Assembly (NCBI GenBank): GCA_977017575.1
Contig: CDRNVI010000011.1
Span: forward strand, 1-64,000
Length of the DNA: 64,000 nt
Source: Paramoeba atlantica
Lineage: Eukaryota > Protista > Discosea
Direction of reading: 5' to 3'
The notes beneath the pieces were generated by a model, which worked only from the letters and a program-made list of their open reading frames with translations, was not told where the DNA came from and did not search any database. Each line of letters opens with the position of its first letter. The first letter of the stretch is position 1. The translations under genes and the position numbers were made by a program. Shown in pieces: positions 5,998-61,666 of the stretch.

Positions 5998-6386
5998 GGC
6001 GTAACTTGTGAAATCCCCACTATGAAAGAAATATTTTCCACGACAATCTGCCTCATCCTGAGTGTCCCACAGAGGCGCTACTCACCATGTTTACGCTAGC
6101 GCAGTGGCTTCCGGGGTTTTTATCATTCGAAAAGGTCACACGGGCTGAGGATCGAACCTCCGTGCAAGTGTTTTGACATTCAGCACATGGCTACAGTTTG
6201 CCACGTGTTGCGAAAATTGACGGGGCGGGAATCGAACCAGGAGTTTGGTTCGTCAGTCTCAGAAAAGCACGCCCTGCCACTAGACAAGTTTCCAGGTTGC
6301 ATTTTGGGCTAAGACTCGTGGAACAACAAGTTCATCAGTTTGACAAAAGCGAACAATGAGCTCTGGTGGTTGGTAAAGCCCTTGTT

Positions 6387-6505
6387 AACTTTAACGATAA
6401 AGATACAGTTTCTGTACCTTGTTGGTATGAGAAGCTTCGAACTCTAAGTTCGCTTGAAGGCCCCGGTTCCCGAGAAGGGAACTGGGGCTTATTTGCGTTA
6501 CAATA
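6387..6505 (+). ncRNA. SL RNA: SL RNA gene, unit 3 first copy (exon 6387-6424)
   Basis: Exon as at 852. Confidence 0.92.
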
Positions 6506-6683
6506 AGCGAAAATTGACGGGGCGGGAATCGAACCAGGAGTTTGGTTCGTCAGTCTCAGAAAAGCACGCCCTGCCACTAGACAAGTTTCCAGGTTGCATT
6601 TTGGGCTAAGACTCGTGGAACAACAAGTTCATCAGTTTGACAAAAGCGAACAATGAGCTCTGGTGGTTGGTAAAGCCCTTGTT

Positions 6684-6802
6684 AACTTTAACGATAAAGA
6701 TACAGTTTCTGTCCCTTGTTGGTATGAGAAGCTTCGAACTCTAAGTTCGCTTGAAGGCCCCGGTTCCCGAGAAGGGAACTGGGGCTTATTTGCGTTACAA
6801 TA
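6684..6802 (+). ncRNA. SL RNA: SL RNA gene, unit 3 second copy, variant exon
   Basis: Exon 6684-6721 with CTGTCCC. Confidence 0.85.
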
Positions 6803-7246
6803 ACTCTGTCACCAGGCAGTCTGACTCGCAAAATCGGACTCCACCGATAAATAGGCAGGATGGCATGTTCATTAACGTCTGAAAATCTGCGGCACCGCAA
6901 TTTAAATCTGCACCCATCCTAACACATCACACAATATATCAACTAATCTTCTCGGTCATCCGCAATCCCGGTCAATGCCTCCTACAAAGATCTCAACGAC
7001 ACCTATAATCAGGCCAGCAATCGTGGAAAATTTGTGCAAATCCAATATATGCATGAACACCCTCACGGGTGGACCTTGTTTATCATACGCTCATTGGCGC
7101 AGAGATATTCCCCTTAATGCGACGGTCGATATCATCGGCACATGATCCGCCCACAACGGATGTCGCACCAAGGGGCATTTGGAACGATAACACGAGGCAG
7201 AGTCACGCACAGCGGTACTCAAGGGGAAGTCTCAAGGGAAAAAAGC

Positions 7247-8387
7247 TCACTCAAAGAGTGAGCCGGGGAGGGGTAATGGGAAGTTCAATAATGGGAGTTC
7301 ATATATTGGATCTGACTCGAGGATTGTCTGTTGAAGAGAATCAGAAGAAGCCGTTATTTCCGCACAATTCTTATCATAAACAATGAAACGGTCTAAGTTA
7401 GTTTGTTTCAATTCTTCATCACTACGACCTCGCTTTTTTTGCATGAGAGGATTAGAGTAGCGGGAAGATTGTGCTTTATGCTCCTTTACTTTACATTCTA
7501 GAATTCGGACTCGTTCCGGTGTAAAAGGAGAATATTTACCTCCCCACTCTTGACGTAAATACACCTCCAGATTATGAATTATCAAACGATATGCAAAACT
7601 ATAGTACAAAAGAGAATCTGAAAATTTAGTCCAATTTCGGAATGCTAACCACCTGCCTGTGCAAGAGCGGCTGAAAATATTCTCGACACGAGCGCGAAAA
7701 TGAGATAAGGACTCATTGTACGCAAGTTTTACATCTGCTTCGCGAACGTAATCAGAAATAGGCTTGTTCGCCTGCAAAGAAGGCCATATATGCGTTTTGG
7801 CGTGTGGAGTTATGATTCTTTGACATTCGTAAAATCCTCCATCTGCCAAAGCTCTAATTCCGCGAGAAGAAACAAAGCGAAGTACACCACAATCCTGAAT
7901 GACAGAATCAGATGAAGCGCCACAATACAAGCCATCCCCAAAAAAACAAACGTACCCTGTCAACGTGCGCCCTACCATAGCTTTGAGTACGTGTTCCCCG
8001 GTACTTTGGGTTATAACACCCAGGTCTTGCATCCACATACATGTAGATGGGAACAGTGTCTATCAACACCTTTACATCCGGCGGCCAGAAACCAAAGGTT
8101 GTATTGTTCGGATGGTTTAACATCTCGTCGCTGGGGTTCAGAAGCCATTTCTCACTCAGCTTTGTGTAAAGTTCATAAAAAAAATTGGGAATTGTATCCT
8201 TACAGGATCGGATCGACCAACCCCTTTTTGACATAAACTTGGCGGCAGAAGACCATCTAGCACCGTTGTAGAACCACGTAAACGAGGCGTCTACTACATC
8301 GCGATCGAAACCGCATTGATAAATTAAATGGTGAAACGAAGCAAGTGTGAGCCCACAGTCAGTCAACTCCCCAAGGTTAGATGACAT
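7247..8387 (-). mobile_element. PIF/Harbinger/ISL2EU-type DDE transposase (DDE_Tnp_4-like), split by a +1 frameshift near 7996-7999; C-terminus runs into the SL/5S array
   Basis: Motifs LIDTVPI...YNPKY(R)/EHVLKAMVG...GASSD, LADGGF, IITPH, YNESLSHFRARVENIF, IIHNL; removing one G from a GGGG run joins the two ORFs. Confidence 0.8.
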
Positions 8388-8601
8388 TAAGACGTACTAG
8401 TCGTATTTGATAAAATTGCTAAATACCATTAAGTAGCAATGTTGCAACGTTAGTAGTTGATCTTTAATAGTTTAATATCATACATGTATATTTGTTGCGT
8501 ATGAGAAATAGAGTAATACAATTAACTTTGACTTGCACGAAATACTTTTACTTGAACTTTTACTTTACATGAGCCACTTTGGCCTGCATACTAAACACTT
8601 C

Positions 8602-9393
8602 TCATTCAATGATTTCAACGAGGTTCGGTTCTCGAGACCGCTTTACCTGAACAACAAAATTTGCCTTGATCGAAGCTACTCCGAGTTCCACAAGTTTTTC
8701 CCAGGTCTCTTCTGGATTCAGATCATCGACGTCGTAGTCAATGGAGCTCAGCTTTCCGAGGGAGCGTTTGCGGGTGCTTGCATGCGGGTTGGCAAAATGA
8801 ACCTTCTCTGTCAAGACCTTATAGAGTCTGTCGCGCTCGTCCTTACGTTGATCAATACTTGAGCGCGTGTAGGAGGCCCACATGTTCCGCAGAAGTATAC
8901 CAGTGGGGCGTACGTCTTTGGGATGTAATGCCACCTTGAAGTATTGAGTTGAAAGAAGACGTGCGGAGCGCATAAATTTTTCGTACTCGTCGTTTCGAGA
9001 GCAGGCATTTATTTGAACAAGAATTTGCACAATGTCTTTGGCGACAAGACGCCTCCCTAGGAAAGTGTGCTTAACGTACAAGCAACATACGTATTGCGCT
9101 TTGGCTGGATCCGTCCCACAGGAAACAAGTTTTTCTTTCTGTGATCGTGACATTTGCTCGAGGTCTTTCGACGAGGAGCAGCGAGGACATATTTTGGCCA
9201 GAATCGGCACGTTTGCATAATCGCAGTTGGCACATTGCTCTACTTCCACACTTGATTCAGTGTTACTCTGAATCGGTGTTTCGCAATACAAGCACCGTCG
9301 TGGAGAACATAGCGTGAACGGTGTAACCTTTTCACATTGAACGCAGAACAGAGCAGGGATAACGTCACCTCCAGCCCGAACGCTTTCAGCCAT
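8602..9393 (-). CDS. Hypothetical protein with N-terminal multiple zinc ribbons (263 aa)
   Basis: CVQC, CLYC, CANC, CPRC pairs; clean ATG-to-stop ORF. Confidence 0.65.
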   Translation of the reverse strand: MAESVRAGGDVIPALFCVQCEKVTPFTLCSPRRCLYCETPIQSNTESSVEVEQCANCDYANVPILAKICPRCSSSKDLEQMSRSQKEKLVSCGTDPAKAQYVCCLYVKHTFLGRRLVAKDIVQILVQINACSRNDEYEKFMRSARLLSTQYFKVALHPKDVRPTGILLRNMWASYTRSSIDQRKDERDRLYKVLTEKVHFANPHASTRKRSLGKLSSIDYDVDDLNPEETWEKLVELGVASIKANFVVQVKRSREPNLVEIIE

Positions 9394-9517
9394 GTCAATG
9401 TTTTGAAGAAATGAAACCTACTACCCTCATTTTTAAAATCTCAGTTTAAAACGCGCTTATAAACGAAGAAGCCATTCATACTCAGTAGAAACAATTTACA
9501 AACACCAATAAAAAAAA

Positions 9518-9803
9518 TCCAAATCATTCCGGATTGCTCCGGATGGTCACTGGCAAGCCAGACCCTTCACAGACAGATTTGGAAGTTCCGAGGCCGCTCT
9601 ACCAGTTTCCGCTTGTCCAAGGCGGCACCAACGTGCTGTTACCAACACACTGCGTCGACGAACTGTACGTCAACACGGCTTACCCAAGAGGTGTAAGCCG
9701 GGTAAGGGAGCTGGTTCCCCGAGGGGAGGGTCCGGGACGGTCCTCCGAGTACTGGGCCTAGTCGGTTATCAGCCCAGCCTCTTAGAGTGAGGCCGCCGGG
9801 AAT
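9518..9803 (-). ncRNA. Unidentified highly structured RNA (about 280 nt), probably Pol III
   Basis: Minus strand: closing helix ATTCCCGG/CCGGAAT, about 9 hairpins including GUAA, GCAA and CUUG tetraloops, then T8 (A-run 9510-9517 on +). Confidence 0.65.
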
Positions 9804-9805
9804 AT

Positions 9806-9884
9806 TGCGATGAGCGGGTTTGAACTCGCCGTCTGAGCACCATGTGCTTCAAACTTTGAATTCTTGCCACTCCGCCACCTCCGC
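9806..9884 (-). promoter_or_regulatory. Degenerate class II (Leu/Ser-like) tRNA-like leader with consensus A and B boxes
   Basis: A box TGGCGGAGTGG, variable-arm hairpin GCAC-ATG-GTGC, B box GAGTTCAAACC, imperfect acceptor stem GCGGAGG/CTCATCGC; no 7-nt anticodon loop. Confidence 0.65.
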
Positions 9885-9913
9885 TCTAGAGCGGAGGTGG
9901 CGGAGTGGCAAGA
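9862..9913. repeat. Perfect 52-bp palindrome with no spacer
   Basis: TCTTGCCACTCCGCCACCTCCGCTCT|AGAGCGGAGGTGGCGGAGTGGCAAGA. Confidence 0.95.
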
Positions 9914-10072
9914 CAAACACCAATGCAATAGCTTCATGTTACATTCTATATTTTGTTTTCTAAAGATCTACTTAGGAGGATGAAGATTCCTAAAACTAGA
10001 CTCGCCGTGCCATCCTGTGCCATTTCGTGCCATCCTGTGCCATCCACAGAGGGTAAACTTGCACAGTGTCCA

Positions 10073-10209
10073 ATGAGTCGAGAAAAACCAGTTTAAACAG
10101 CCGGAAACGCACCTATGTAAAATTCTCTACACGTTCAAAAAAAAGATGATAAAAAACAGAACAGTTTTTCAAATTTCGAGGGGGGGACTTATAGCTGATT
10201 GCTAGTGTA
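10073..10209. mobile_element. Solo right end of the MITE family seen at 39278-40026
   Basis: High identity to about 39890-40028, ending GGGGGGGACTTATAGCTGATTGCTAGTG|TA. Confidence 0.8.
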
Positions 10210-40789: not shown

Positions 40790-41716
40790 TTTCAATTAAA
40801 CATTTGTGCAATTGCATCTTATTGCAAATATTATCTTCTTGTAAGTACAAAAGGAGATATTCTACGCACGTGTATCTCGGCGCTTAAAAATACCACCGCG
40901 TTTAACGAAGAGACTAAGAAAGAAAAATTGCCAAAAGATCATGAATAATCTATTTTTTCAGGTAGAAAAGCCCGATTTGTAAGCGAACATTTCGAAATTT
41001 CAACCCGAATTTGGTCCATTTTTGATGCCTTACCAGTAGAGGCGAATCTGTCGAAAAAAACGTCGCAGAATGGTAGCCAAGATCCCAAACTCTTAAAATA
41101 CATTTTAGGAGTCGATTTTGGAAAAATATTATTTTTGCTTTTTTTTGGGTCAAAAAAAGATTTTGGTCACCCCAAAAATTTCGGAAATTTTGACCTTGTC
41201 GGACCCCTCCTGCGCGTACTAGGGGGGGTGGAAAATTATCGCCGCGGCCTACTCTACCACTTCCCTGCGCTCGATTTTGAAAAGCAAAAAATTCGAGAAA
41301 AAAATCCCGACGTATGCCCCCCCTGGACCCCCCCCCCTGGACCCCCCCCCTAGACCCCCCCTTTTTTTTTAATTTTTTTTAATTTTGGACCACGGGAGCC
41401 CCCTTTATATTTCTTTCTTCTATTATATTACTGTGTTCCTCTTTATATTTTCACTGTTTTTGTTCACTTTTTTTCAATAATCGAGGGTAGAGCGGTTATA
41501 CAACCACCGCAACTTCAGTTTAATAGTAAACTGCATAAGCGCTTCTTTTGTAACGATCTCCACGTCATTCCCACATAATCCGGCAATCACGCGCCGGCAA
41601 ATCATCAACCTGACGCCAAACGACTGCGATAGTGCTACGCGTAGCGCAAAAAAAATCCTTATTTTCCAAACGTGGGTACGGAGAATACGCTCTAGACGAA
41701 GAAATTATATCCTTCA

Positions 41717-59473: not shown

Positions 59474-61666
59474 ATGAAGTGTGTACCCTCAATTTGCCCA
59501 TGCTTCCGGCTACTACCAATAATGCCTCCTACACGAGTGCTCCATACTGCCTTGGTTCCAGCAAATCTCCTTTTCCTTCGCCCGTGTCGCTACACATCGC
59601 ACTCAACCTCCATCCTCCGCAACCGACCCTCAAGCGACGCGTACGTCACCTGCGGCATCCACGGTCGCAGCCGCCCGATCCACGCCATGCAACCCATGTT
59701 AGAAGACATCATCAGCGACCAGCACGACACTATTTGGTGTCCTCGCGGGTACGACATCCCTGGCGTACTCAACGCCCAGGAAGTGGAGGAGAAACTCGCC
59801 CTCTCCTCCCGATCTCTCTGCTCAAACTCCTCTTCCACCGCAAACGTGATCCACTACCGTTGCAAGACCTCCTCTCCTTGTATTCGAACCCAACCCAACG
59901 CATACGCCACAACCCCAACCAAAGCCCAACCCCTCCTCACCTCCCAAGACGCCCATCCCGATATGTGTACCCCCTCACCTCACACAACAGCGAATCCTGG
60001 ACCCCACACCCCTCCACCCACCCCACCTTCAACCCCCACAACCCTACCCCCCTCGTTCCTATCCACGCCCCTCTCCTCCCCCACCTCCCCCTCCCCTCTC
60101 CCCTACAAATGCTCCGTACACAACTGGGGACGTAGCGACGGTCCCTCCTTCCTGGTCTGTTTGAGTGGTACTACTCCTACCCCTACTCCATCCACTACTA
60201 CTACTACCACTGCTCCATCCACCACCACGACTACTCCATCCACCACTACTACTACTCCATCCACTACTACCACTACTCGGAATCCATCCACGACTACTAC
60301 TACTACTACTACTCGCAATCCATCCACGACTACTACCACTACGCCATCCACGACTACTACTCGTAATCCATCCACTACTACGACTACTCCATCCACTGCT
60401 GCTACTCCGTCCACTACTACCACTACTCGTAATCCATCCACTACTACTACTACTCGCAATCCATCCACGACTACTACCACTACGCCATCCACGACTACTA
60501 CCACTACTTCATCCACTCCTCCATCCACTCCTACACCCCCTTCCTCTTCTTCCTCTACTACCACCACTACTCCATGCACCACTACGACTAGCAATCCATC
60601 CACTCCCCCTACTACTGCCTCCACCACTACCCCTGCTCCCTCCCCTACCCCTCCCCCTTCCCCGTTCTACGCGTGTACCCTGGCCCGCCCCTGCCGCGGG
60701 CTCACCCAGCACAAGCTCCAGGCCCGCACCCCGTACTCCTACAACGCCATGGTCCACTGCAGCACGCACCGGGAACGGCGGCGGCTGTGTGACATGGTGT
60801 GGGGGCGGCTGAGGGGGGGGAGGGGGGACGCGACGGGGGAGGGGGGGGAGGGGAGGGGGAAGGGGCTGTGGGTGTGTGGGCCGTGGAAGCCGTGTAGGGG
60901 GGGGAGAGGGGTAGAGGGGGGTACGGAGGTACAGGGGGGTAAGGAGGTGCAGGGGGGTGAAGAGGAAGGAGAAGGGGATGGGGTGAGATCCGAACGGTTG
61001 GGGGGGAGCGGACGACGTGAGGGGGAGGGCGTGGGAGTGGTGAGGGGGGGTGGGGGGAAATCGGGAGTGGTGCGGGTGAGGTGTGCGCGCCACCATGTGG
61101 TACGGTACCGACCGTATGTGGAGAGGGTGGAGGCGGCGGAGCCGGGGGCGGAGGGGGTGTTTGTGTGTAAAGGGGAGTTTCGGTGTTCCGAGGAGAGTGT
61201 GGCGCTGGATCCGTTTGGGTATGCGCTGGAGAGGGAGATTGCAAGGGTGAAGGAGGAGAAGGGGTTGCGGTTTGTGTGTAGTGAGCACGTGAGGGCGGAA
61301 ACGGGAAGGGGGGAAGGGGAAAAACCGAGAAGACCGTTGCTGGGTGCGGGGAAGGTGGTGTTCCAACTGAAGCCACGACCAGGGTCGTGGTACTGCTCGG
61401 CGTCTCAGTGTGGGGAGCTGAACATGAGTGCATGCTACTGGTGTTTTTATTGCAACACGGCACGCTCGTCACAGAGTCGTGTAATTCCCTGGGATCCTTC
61501 GAAAAAAGATTTTCCTGGGAAAATTGGGGACTGGGTATGTCTGGCGTGCCGGAAAATGAATTTCCAATTTGAGCGCCACCAAGATGAGAGCGGCGAGCTG
61601 CGTAAAATTACCAAATGTGCGTTTTGCCGCACCTTAAAGAGTGATGAGTCGCCTGTAATACAGTAA
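59474..61666 (+). CDS. Protein with 4-5 C-x2-H fingers, Thr-rich repeat and two C-terminal RanBP2-type zinc fingers
   Basis: CGIHGRSR, CSVHNWGR, CSTHRERR, CARHHVVR; WYCSASQCGELN..WCFYC and WVCLACRKMN..KCAFC. Confidence 0.8.
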   Translation: MKCVPSICPCFRLLPIMPPTRVLHTALVPANLLFLRPCRYTSHSTSILRNRPSSDAYVTCGIHGRSRPIHAMQPMLEDIISDQHDTIWCPRGYDIPGVLNAQEVEEKLALSSRSLCSNSSSTANVIHYRCKTSSPCIRTQPNAYATTPTKAQPLLTSQDAHPDMCTPSPHTTANPGPHTPPPTPPSTPTTLPPSFLSTPLSSPTSPSPLPYKCSVHNWGRSDGPSFLVCLSGTTPTPTPSTTTTTTAPSTTTTTPSTTTTTPSTTTTTRNPSTTTTTTTTRNPSTTTTTTPSTTTTRNPSTTTTTPSTAATPSTTTTTRNPSTTTTTRNPSTTTTTTPSTTTTTTSSTPPSTPTPPSSSSSTTTTTPCTTTTSNPSTPPTTASTTTPAPSPTPPPSPFYACTLARPCRGLTQHKLQARTPYSYNAMVHCSTHRERRRLCDMVWGRLRGGRGDATGEGGEGRGKGLWVCGPWKPCRGGRGVEGGTEVQGGKEVQGGEEEGEGDGVRSERLGGSGRREGEGVGVVRGGGGKSGVVRVRCARHHVVRYRPYVERVEAAEPGAEGVFVCKGEFRCSEESVALDPFGYALEREIARVKEEKGLRFVCSEHVRAETGRGEGEKPRRPLLGAGKVVFQLKPRPGSWYCSASQCGELNMSACYWCFYCNTARSSQSRVIPWDPSKKDFPGKIGDWVCLACRKMNFQFERHQDESGELRKITKCAFCRTLKSDESPVIQ
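60165..60645 (+). repeat. Coding low-complexity repeat ((RN)PSTTTTT)n
   Basis: Recurring CCATCCAC(T/G)ACTAC units. Confidence 0.9.

Follow-up and report, generated by a model that had tools for sequence, protein, structure and literature searches.

In a kinetoplastid-type genome, the minus strand of positions 9510–9887 very probably carries a full-length copy, inserted recently, of a SINE that is young, present in many copies and built of an A/B-box head, a hairpin body and a U-rich tail. The window, as the term is used here, is the whole stretch of DNA that was analysed (64 kb). According to the model we propose, the element starts with a decayed, tRNA-related head of approximately 80 nt, whose A and B boxes would form an internal RNA polymerase III (Pol III) promoter. 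The head would be followed by a GC-rich body of approximately 290 nt made of stable hairpins, and by a U-rich tail (a T-run or GGAUUU repeats) that would also end Pol III transcription. Reverse transcription would be primed at the 3' end of the RNA by a LINE enzyme, and the conserved 3' domain and the tail would be recognised by the reverse transcriptase of this partner LINE. The assignment as a SINE with the head as its putative internal Pol III promoter follows from the insertion with a target-site duplication (TSD), the empty sites, and the many copies that are 96–98% alike, truncated ones included.

The features that define the insertion are as follows.

9510–9887, minus strand: full-length SINE copy with head, body and tail, matching profile positions 2–382 (E 9e-145).
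9498–9509, no strand: TSD on the 3' side of the element, an exact 12-nt direct repeat.
9913–9924, no strand: TSD on the 5' side of the element, an exact 12-nt direct repeat reading ATTGGTGTTTGT on the minus strand.
9888–9913, minus strand: 26-nt inverted duplicate of the first 26 nt of the element, the outer arm of a palindrome that is private to this copy.

One of the two 12-nt direct repeats abuts the 26+26-nt palindrome, and the other abuts a run of eight T residues (T8). The host DNA on both sides (7508–9509 and 9913–10074) is a copy of a multi-copy element. This host element encodes a 263-aa double zinc ribbon protein (9393–8602), for which Pfam and the protein atlas gave generic zinc ribbons only, and a transposase of the DDE_Tnp_4 (Harbinger/PIF) type in two overlapping frames (8387–7908 and 8038–7247). 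The insertion site of the SINE is a copy of a Harbinger-type DNA transposon. Paralogs of the host element on contig L017 of the ENA assembly ERZ24900291 are 86–97% identical to it, the neighbouring 263-aa ORF having a 95%-identical paralog there, and one of them is interrupted by another copy of the SINE (L017:9464–9834). Two paralogous sites on the same contig (L017:905–1000 and L017:7975–8065) are empty: one flank runs straight into the other, ATTGGTGTTTGT occurs once, and the insert is missing. The TSD and the empty paralogous sites together show that 9510–9912 (403 bp) was inserted with a 12-bp duplication. We also noted four 10-bp tandem units of a GTGCCATCCT-like sequence at 10006–10043, which belong to the host element and lie upstream of where the SINE was inserted.

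The palindrome arms (9862–9887 and 9888–9913) are 100% complementary with zero spacer, and no other such palindrome occurs in the 64 kb. Its centre (9887/9888) lies 3 nt before the head, and at its outer end it has one base in common with the TSD. The outer arm is missing from the other 11 full-length copies. Most simply, it may have arisen by twin priming or by copy-back at the RNA's 5' end during insertion. Both cDNA ends would get to the RNA's 5' end and then be joined, by a twin-priming mechanism as in LINE-1. With such an origin, the transcript start would be at approximately 9887, and the mirrored A box at 9898–9908 (about 93–100 nt from the body) would be a by-product and not a divergent -100 promoter box like those of the 5S and SL genes in the window.

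A profile search of the window and contigs L017–L021 (~133 kb) found 12 full-length and six 5'-truncated copies. Five of the full-length copies lie on L017, and the 64-kb window contains no copy besides that at 9510–9887. The truncated copies begin at profile positions 157, 228, 231, 308, 345 and 349, and all of them reach the 3' end. In addition, an antisense ORF of the element, called as a "protein", forms 18 clusters on 16 different ENA contigs, as told apart by their lengths. All other copies come from one assembly, ERZ24900291, apparently of the same organism, so that the copy number in the source genome is an extrapolation. The TSD is 12 bp at 9510–9912 and 10–14 bp in other copies; clear TSDs of 10–14 bp flank nine copies, two of them truncated, and none of the 12 full-length copies proved to be TSD-free. 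Copies diverge from the consensus by 1.6–3.7%, the copy at 9510–9887 by 2.1% (12-copy consensus), as would fit a young and probably active family. The tails range from T8 to T16, with (GGATTT)n-like repeats in some copies and (CAAA)n in one.

Several copies have subfamily-diagnostic changes in common, including one compensatory pair. Most between-copy changes in the body are singletons, as expected under neutral decay. In several of the shared changes, wobble preserves the pairing; examples are U-G to C-G (head), U-A to U-G (body) and C-G to U-G (body). Pair counts were computed by script over the aligned copies. The least variable part is the last ~75 nt before the tail.

9524–9596, minus strand: 3' domain with the CUUG (9550–9561) and GCAA (9528–9543) hairpins.

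Differing alignment cells amount to 0.7% in this 3' domain (after removal of a 5-nt deletion specific to the 9510–9887 copy); for the 5' body the figure is 2.4%, and for the head 4.5% (Fisher p=8e-4 and 1e-7). Low variability is expected here if the reverse transcriptase of the partner LINE must recognise the domain. The deletion (GACGU) follows GGUAGAG; relative to the consensus, the 9510–9887 copy also has GUAA for GCAA (still GNRA) and GGGG for AGGG. No LINE sharing the 3' domain of the SINE was found in the window or in contigs L017–L021.

One full-length copy (L018:9637–10013) is fused at its 5' end to a near-complete copy of 5S rRNA (L018:9520–9636). This fusion looks like a template-switch chimera. 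The 5' truncation, the TSDs and the chimeras with cellular RNAs are signs of target-primed reverse transcription that starts at the RNA's 3' end. Individual copies show further peculiarities. At L017:8737–8800, the GGAGGTGGCGGAGTGG (A-box) segment at the 5' end of a SINE copy is directly duplicated in tandem three to four times. A full copy at L019:1953–2372 is followed by a second SINE tail of 36 nt, apparently within one 12-nt TSD (AATATAGCTCTA). Another copy, at L021:6650–6680, has no normal tail and ends with A5(CAAA)n, followed by a 10-nt TSD. Other short elements (L017:11270–11365 and L018:20020–20100, both plus strand) end in a small hairpin, approximately 5 nt, and then (GGATT)n or GGATTTGGATTTT. 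Their tails are of the type found on the SINE, which suggests a LINE type in common and might help to trace the partner LINE. Elsewhere in the window, 40876–41515 is 72–85% similar to L017:2912–3757, which points to another dispersed non-coding repeat.

A preliminary description of 9518–9803 had proposed a structured RNA on the minus strand, and its helices, tetraloops, A/B boxes and T8 run were all found on that strand.

9518–9805, minus strand: GC-rich multi-hairpin body, the RNA of the preliminary description, seen from its fold and hairpins and without an Rfam match at E<=10.
9803–9796 with 9532–9526, minus strand: helix ATTCCCGG/CCGGAAT, the proposed closing helix, from complementarity.
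9777–9793, minus strand: hairpin GCCTC/GAGGC (RNA: GCCUC/GAGGC), 9793–9789 pairing with 9781–9777, from pair probabilities.
9752–9777, minus strand: hairpin CTGGGC/GCCCAG (RNA: CUGGGC/GCCCAG), 9777–9772 pairing with 9757–9752, pair probability at least 0.89.
9725–9746, minus strand: hairpin GGAGG/CCTCC (RNA: GGAGG/CCUCC) with an inner CC/GG helix, 9746–9742 pairing with 9729–9725, from pair probabilities.
9677–9699, minus strand: hairpin GGCTTAC/GTAAGCC (RNA: GGCUUAC/GUAAGCC), 9699–9693 pairing with 9683–9677, probability 1.00.
9652–9676, minus strand: 9-bp hairpin GTGTTGACG/CGTCGACGC (RNA: GUGUUGACG/CGUCGACGC), 9676–9668 pairing with 9660–9652, from pair probabilities.
9652–9629, minus strand: 10-bp GNRA hairpin CAGTGTGTTG-GTAA-CAGCACGTTG, from the fold and the tetraloop count.
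9561–9550, minus strand: hairpin CTGG-CTTG-CCAG with a CUUG loop, in the 3' domain.
Within 9543–9528, minus strand: hairpin CCGGA-GCAA-TCCGG with a GCAA loop, in the 3' domain.
9517–9510, minus strand: T8 run, from the sequence.

The minimum free energy of the fold is -120.4 kcal/mol, with a z-score against dinucleotide shuffles of -3.2 for the minus strand and -2.7 for the plus strand. The local hairpins have pair probabilities of 0.8–1.0, and the GC content of the stretch is 0.59, compared with 0.41–0.44 in the flanks. Three hairpins capped by GUAA, CUUG and GCAA are present on the minus strand, where dinucleotide shuffles give 0.35 (P=0.007), and none on the plus strand. At the level of sequence, the structure is beyond chance, and the minus strand is the RNA sense. 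The 9-bp hairpin at 9652–9676 is invariant in all 12 copies. One pair of the GGCUUAC/GUAAGCC hairpin is U-A in six of the 12, U-G in four and C-A in two. Other elements of the proposed fold fared less well. The arms of the closing helix are complementary, but the helix competes with the GCAA hairpin. The two long-range pairs that had been considered possible, ACCAG (9715–9711) with CTGGT (9605–9601) and CCCTTAC (9708–9702) with GTGAAGGG (9570–9563), are complementary as described, with nothing beyond complementarity to back them. Overall, the folds and the boxes support a strand-specific, highly structured RNA unit with an A/B-box head adjoining it upstream and a T-run at its end.

The head and the tail comprise the following features.

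9806–9884, minus strand: tRNA-related head with a putative internal Pol III promoter, from the A/B boxes and a fold z-score of -3.35.
9867–9877, minus strand: A box TGGCGGAGTGG, an exact match to TRGCNNAGTGG in a motif search.
9816–9826, minus strand: B box AGTTCAAACCC, with one mismatch to GGTTCRANNCC in a motif search.
9881–9884, minus strand: 5' strand (GCGG) of the head-closing helix, pairing with 9814–9817.
9814–9817, minus strand: 3' strand (CCGC) of the head-closing helix, pairing with 9881–9884.
9510–9525, minus strand: tail, GAUUUGGA and U8, differing between copies in form and length (T8–T16 or (GGATTT)n).

The A box starts at position 8 of the head, the B box follows 51 nt later, and both are retained in most copies. 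Exact A-box matches number seven in the window, where 0.67 are expected, and three of the seven sit 100 nt from 5S genes. Two more of the exact matches (60150–60560) are due to chance: they are antisense to a low-complexity repeat-coding region and do not belong to Pol III genes. The B-box motif by itself is not significant; its weight comes from its spacing to the A box and from its conservation in 10 of the 12 copies. At pair 9883/9815 of the head-closing helix, six copies have C-G, three have U-A and two have U-G (one of the latter reflects a flank misalignment); this represents one compensatory event within a subfamily. The position of the boxes, the length of approximately 79 nt and the closing helix are tRNA-like traits of the head. 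ARAGORN called no tRNA in the head, the tRNA models of Rfam did not match it, and its MFE fold has no cloverleaf. Since the head is not recognisable as a tRNA, the term "tRNA-derived" remains a resemblance. From the order of the parts, we infer transcription by Pol III from the head to the T-run, which would serve as the terminator; the ends of the RNA and the current activity are predicted on the same sequence-based grounds.

The SL/5S array in the same window has A boxes of its own. Divergent A-box positions repeat with each SL/5S unit (462, 562–572, 742–752 and 852); counted from the first base of the box, the distance is exactly 100 nt to the start of 5S and about 100 nt to that of the SL RNA. 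The array ends in a perfect 297-bp tandem duplication (6210–6803).

The preliminary description had failed to place the RNA among SRP, RNase P or MRP RNAs, and the Rfam searches likewise leave it outside the known families. Searched at the gathering score, the whole window gave only the three 5S genes. At E<=10, queries of 601, 306 and 95 nt gave no match to SRP, RNase P, MRP, tRNA, snRNA or ribozyme models, and the side matches were miRNA models on the palindrome. A divergent RNase MRP, RNase P or SRP RNA has next to no probability. Two strings, GGGGAACCAG and ACUGGUA, loosely resemble CR-I and CR-V, and work by Rosenblad from 2021 reportedly describes MRP RNA in kinetoplastids. Trypanosomatids have a protein-only RNase P. 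For RNase MRP we considered a match to RF00030, a P4 formed from CR-I and CR-V, P5, a P8 loop of the form GARAR and a CR-IV of the form AGNNAN. For nuclear RNase P we considered a match to RF00009 and CR-I to CR-V, P4 having a bulged U. The hallmarks of MRP RNA are a 3-bp P5 beside CR-I, a GARAR pentaloop on P8 and a 6-nt CR-IV (PMC13184271). Against these readings, no Rfam model matched the 306 nt even at E<=10, RF00009 being among those without a match. No hairpin carries a GARAR P8 loop, and there is no 6-nt CR-IV and no P5; AGNNAN was not found before the eP19-like hairpin. The candidate P4 (ACCAG/CUGGU) has just 5 bp and lacks the bulged U. The family consensus moreover reads AGGGAACCAG (AGGG) and not GGGGAACCAG, and the sequence is mobile and multi-copy.

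Other candidates were tried and rejected. An SRP helix 8 or Alu domain is contradicted by the complete pairing of the GUAA hairpin, and no model matches. The AGCA of this hairpin begins at the second nucleotide after the loop; SRP helix 8 has a GNAR tetraloop and a symmetric loop, and its AGCA is three pairs away from the tetraloop. Inspection by eye for a telomerase template, a U1-like CUUACC, the Sm-like GAUUUGGA and C/D or H/ACA boxes gave nothing coherent. Pairing to the SL RNA and to 5S (RNAduplex) was no better than in shuffles. Two pattern scans of metagenomes gave 0 and 13 matches, the 13 being due to chance; a scan of genome contigs gave one chance match in a high-GC bacterial gene, and scans of viral contigs gave 0 matches. 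Nothing was marked as resembling human sequence.

The stretch had previously been likened to a gene of the yeast RPR1 type, which would imply a unique cellular RNA transcribed from a leader promoter. As a resident single-copy ncRNA gene, it could receive a divergent A box approximately 100 nt upstream from the palindrome: the mirrored A box (9898–9908) lies 93–100 nt from the body start, and the 5S and SL genes of the window have a divergent A box at -100. This is very improbable. The 12-bp TSD, the empty sites and the many copies contradict it; these copies are dispersed and partly truncated, and no other copy has the outer palindrome arm. A kinetoplastid gene of the snRNA/7SL type, with divergent A/B boxes at approximately -100, was rejected too; the A box on the opposite strand at 9898–9908 exists only as the private palindrome arm and has no B box. 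We find it scarcely conceivable that the unit is a cassette borne by a DNA transposon, or a MITE with a Pol III RNA gene, tied to the zinc-ribbon ORF and the DDE transposase. It does have the same orientation as the ORF 9393–8602 and the DDE_Tnp_4 ORFs, but the TSD encloses the 403-bp unit alone, paralogous ORF-transposase copies lack the unit, and there are no terminal inverted repeats. The 5' truncation and the variable T or GGATTT tails point instead to retroposition.

The copies could be retro-pseudogenes of an abundant cellular Pol III RNA that is made as a precursor with a tRNA-like leader, with the master gene elsewhere, as 7SL is for Alu. The body folds unusually well, has GNRA and CUUG loops and falls into no known family, and the 5S chimera indicates that a cellular Pol III RNA was copied by reverse transcriptase here. 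We nevertheless consider this origin quite unlikely: many copies have subfamily-diagnostic changes in common, some copies are truncated, the tail is of a type that other retroposons have, conservation is highest at the 3' end, in keeping with selection for retrotransposition, and there is no TSD-free copy among the 12. The related possibility that the SINE body descends from, or doubles as, a cellular Pol III RNA, with a functional master gene giving a precursor with a tRNA-like leader in the way that Alu derives from 7SL, is unlikely. A young SINE family remains the reading that we prefer.

As a SINE, the element can be compared with several known systems. SINEs derived from tRNA are built of head, body and tail and have an internal Pol III promoter of type 2. 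In those of the stringent type, the partner LINE recognises a 3' stem-loop together with short repeats in the tail, as in the pair UnaSINE1/UnaL2. The element described here resembles tRNA-derived SINEs in having an A/B-box head, a non-coding body and a conserved 3' domain of hairpins with short repeats after it, as well as TSDs, 5'-truncated copies, subfamilies and chimeras with cellular RNAs. It differs from them in a head too decayed to assign to any tRNA, in a tail that is U-rich or (GGAUUU)n with its own putative Pol III terminator and not A-rich, in an unusually GC-rich, hairpin-dense body, and in its host, a kinetoplastid-type protist. Pol III SINEs with a tRNA-type head seem to be undescribed in kinetoplastids: a limited search of the literature found no description of one, and to our knowledge none is known.

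With RIME, NARTc and SIDER of the ingi clade, the element has in common a kinetoplastid host, a LINE-dependent mobility (predicted here) and a TSD of ~12 bp. In the ingi-clade LINEs of kinetoplastids, the TSD is conserved at 12 bp (PMC3820030). These retroposons are deletion derivatives of LINEs with a 5' Pr77 (an HDV-like ribozyme and Pol II promoter) and poly(A), whereas the SINE at 9510–9887 carries an A/B-box head of the Pol III type and lacks both Pr77 and poly(A). In a comparison by eye, the Pr77 hallmark of L1Tc was absent and only the 7-mer AGTACTC was in common; Rfam gave no match to an HDV-like ribozyme. The likeness to yeast RPR1 is that a structured RNA ending at a T-run has A and B boxes upstream of it, the co-transcription of the two being predicted here. 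RPR1, however, exists in one copy and encodes an RNase P RNA from which the leader is removed, and the unit here is mobile and multi-copy. Like Alu/B1, which derive from 7SL, the element would yield a structured Pol III SINE RNA, and CCCAGUACUCGGAGG resembles the Alu/7SL string CCCAGCUACUCGGGAGG. This likeness is confined to a 15-nt string, and no SRP or Alu model matches.

These results remove a false lead, in that 9518–9803 is not a missing RNase P, MRP or SRP-like RNA of kinetoplastids. The neighbouring "cassette" is explained by a SINE that landed in a DNA transposon, and the family should be masked when the genome is screened for new structured RNAs. A SINE is an ordinary, known kind of element. 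The non-autonomous retroposons described from this lineage (RIME, NARTc and SIDER) are LINE-deletion derivatives driven by Pr77. The putative twin-priming palindrome and the 5S chimera may serve as natural markers of the RNA's 5' end and of template switching. Together, the copies define a young, probably active SINE family of the Pol III type, whose body is rich in hairpins, whose 3' domain is conserved and whose tail is U-rich or GGAUUU, and this family provides a handle for finding the partner LINE.
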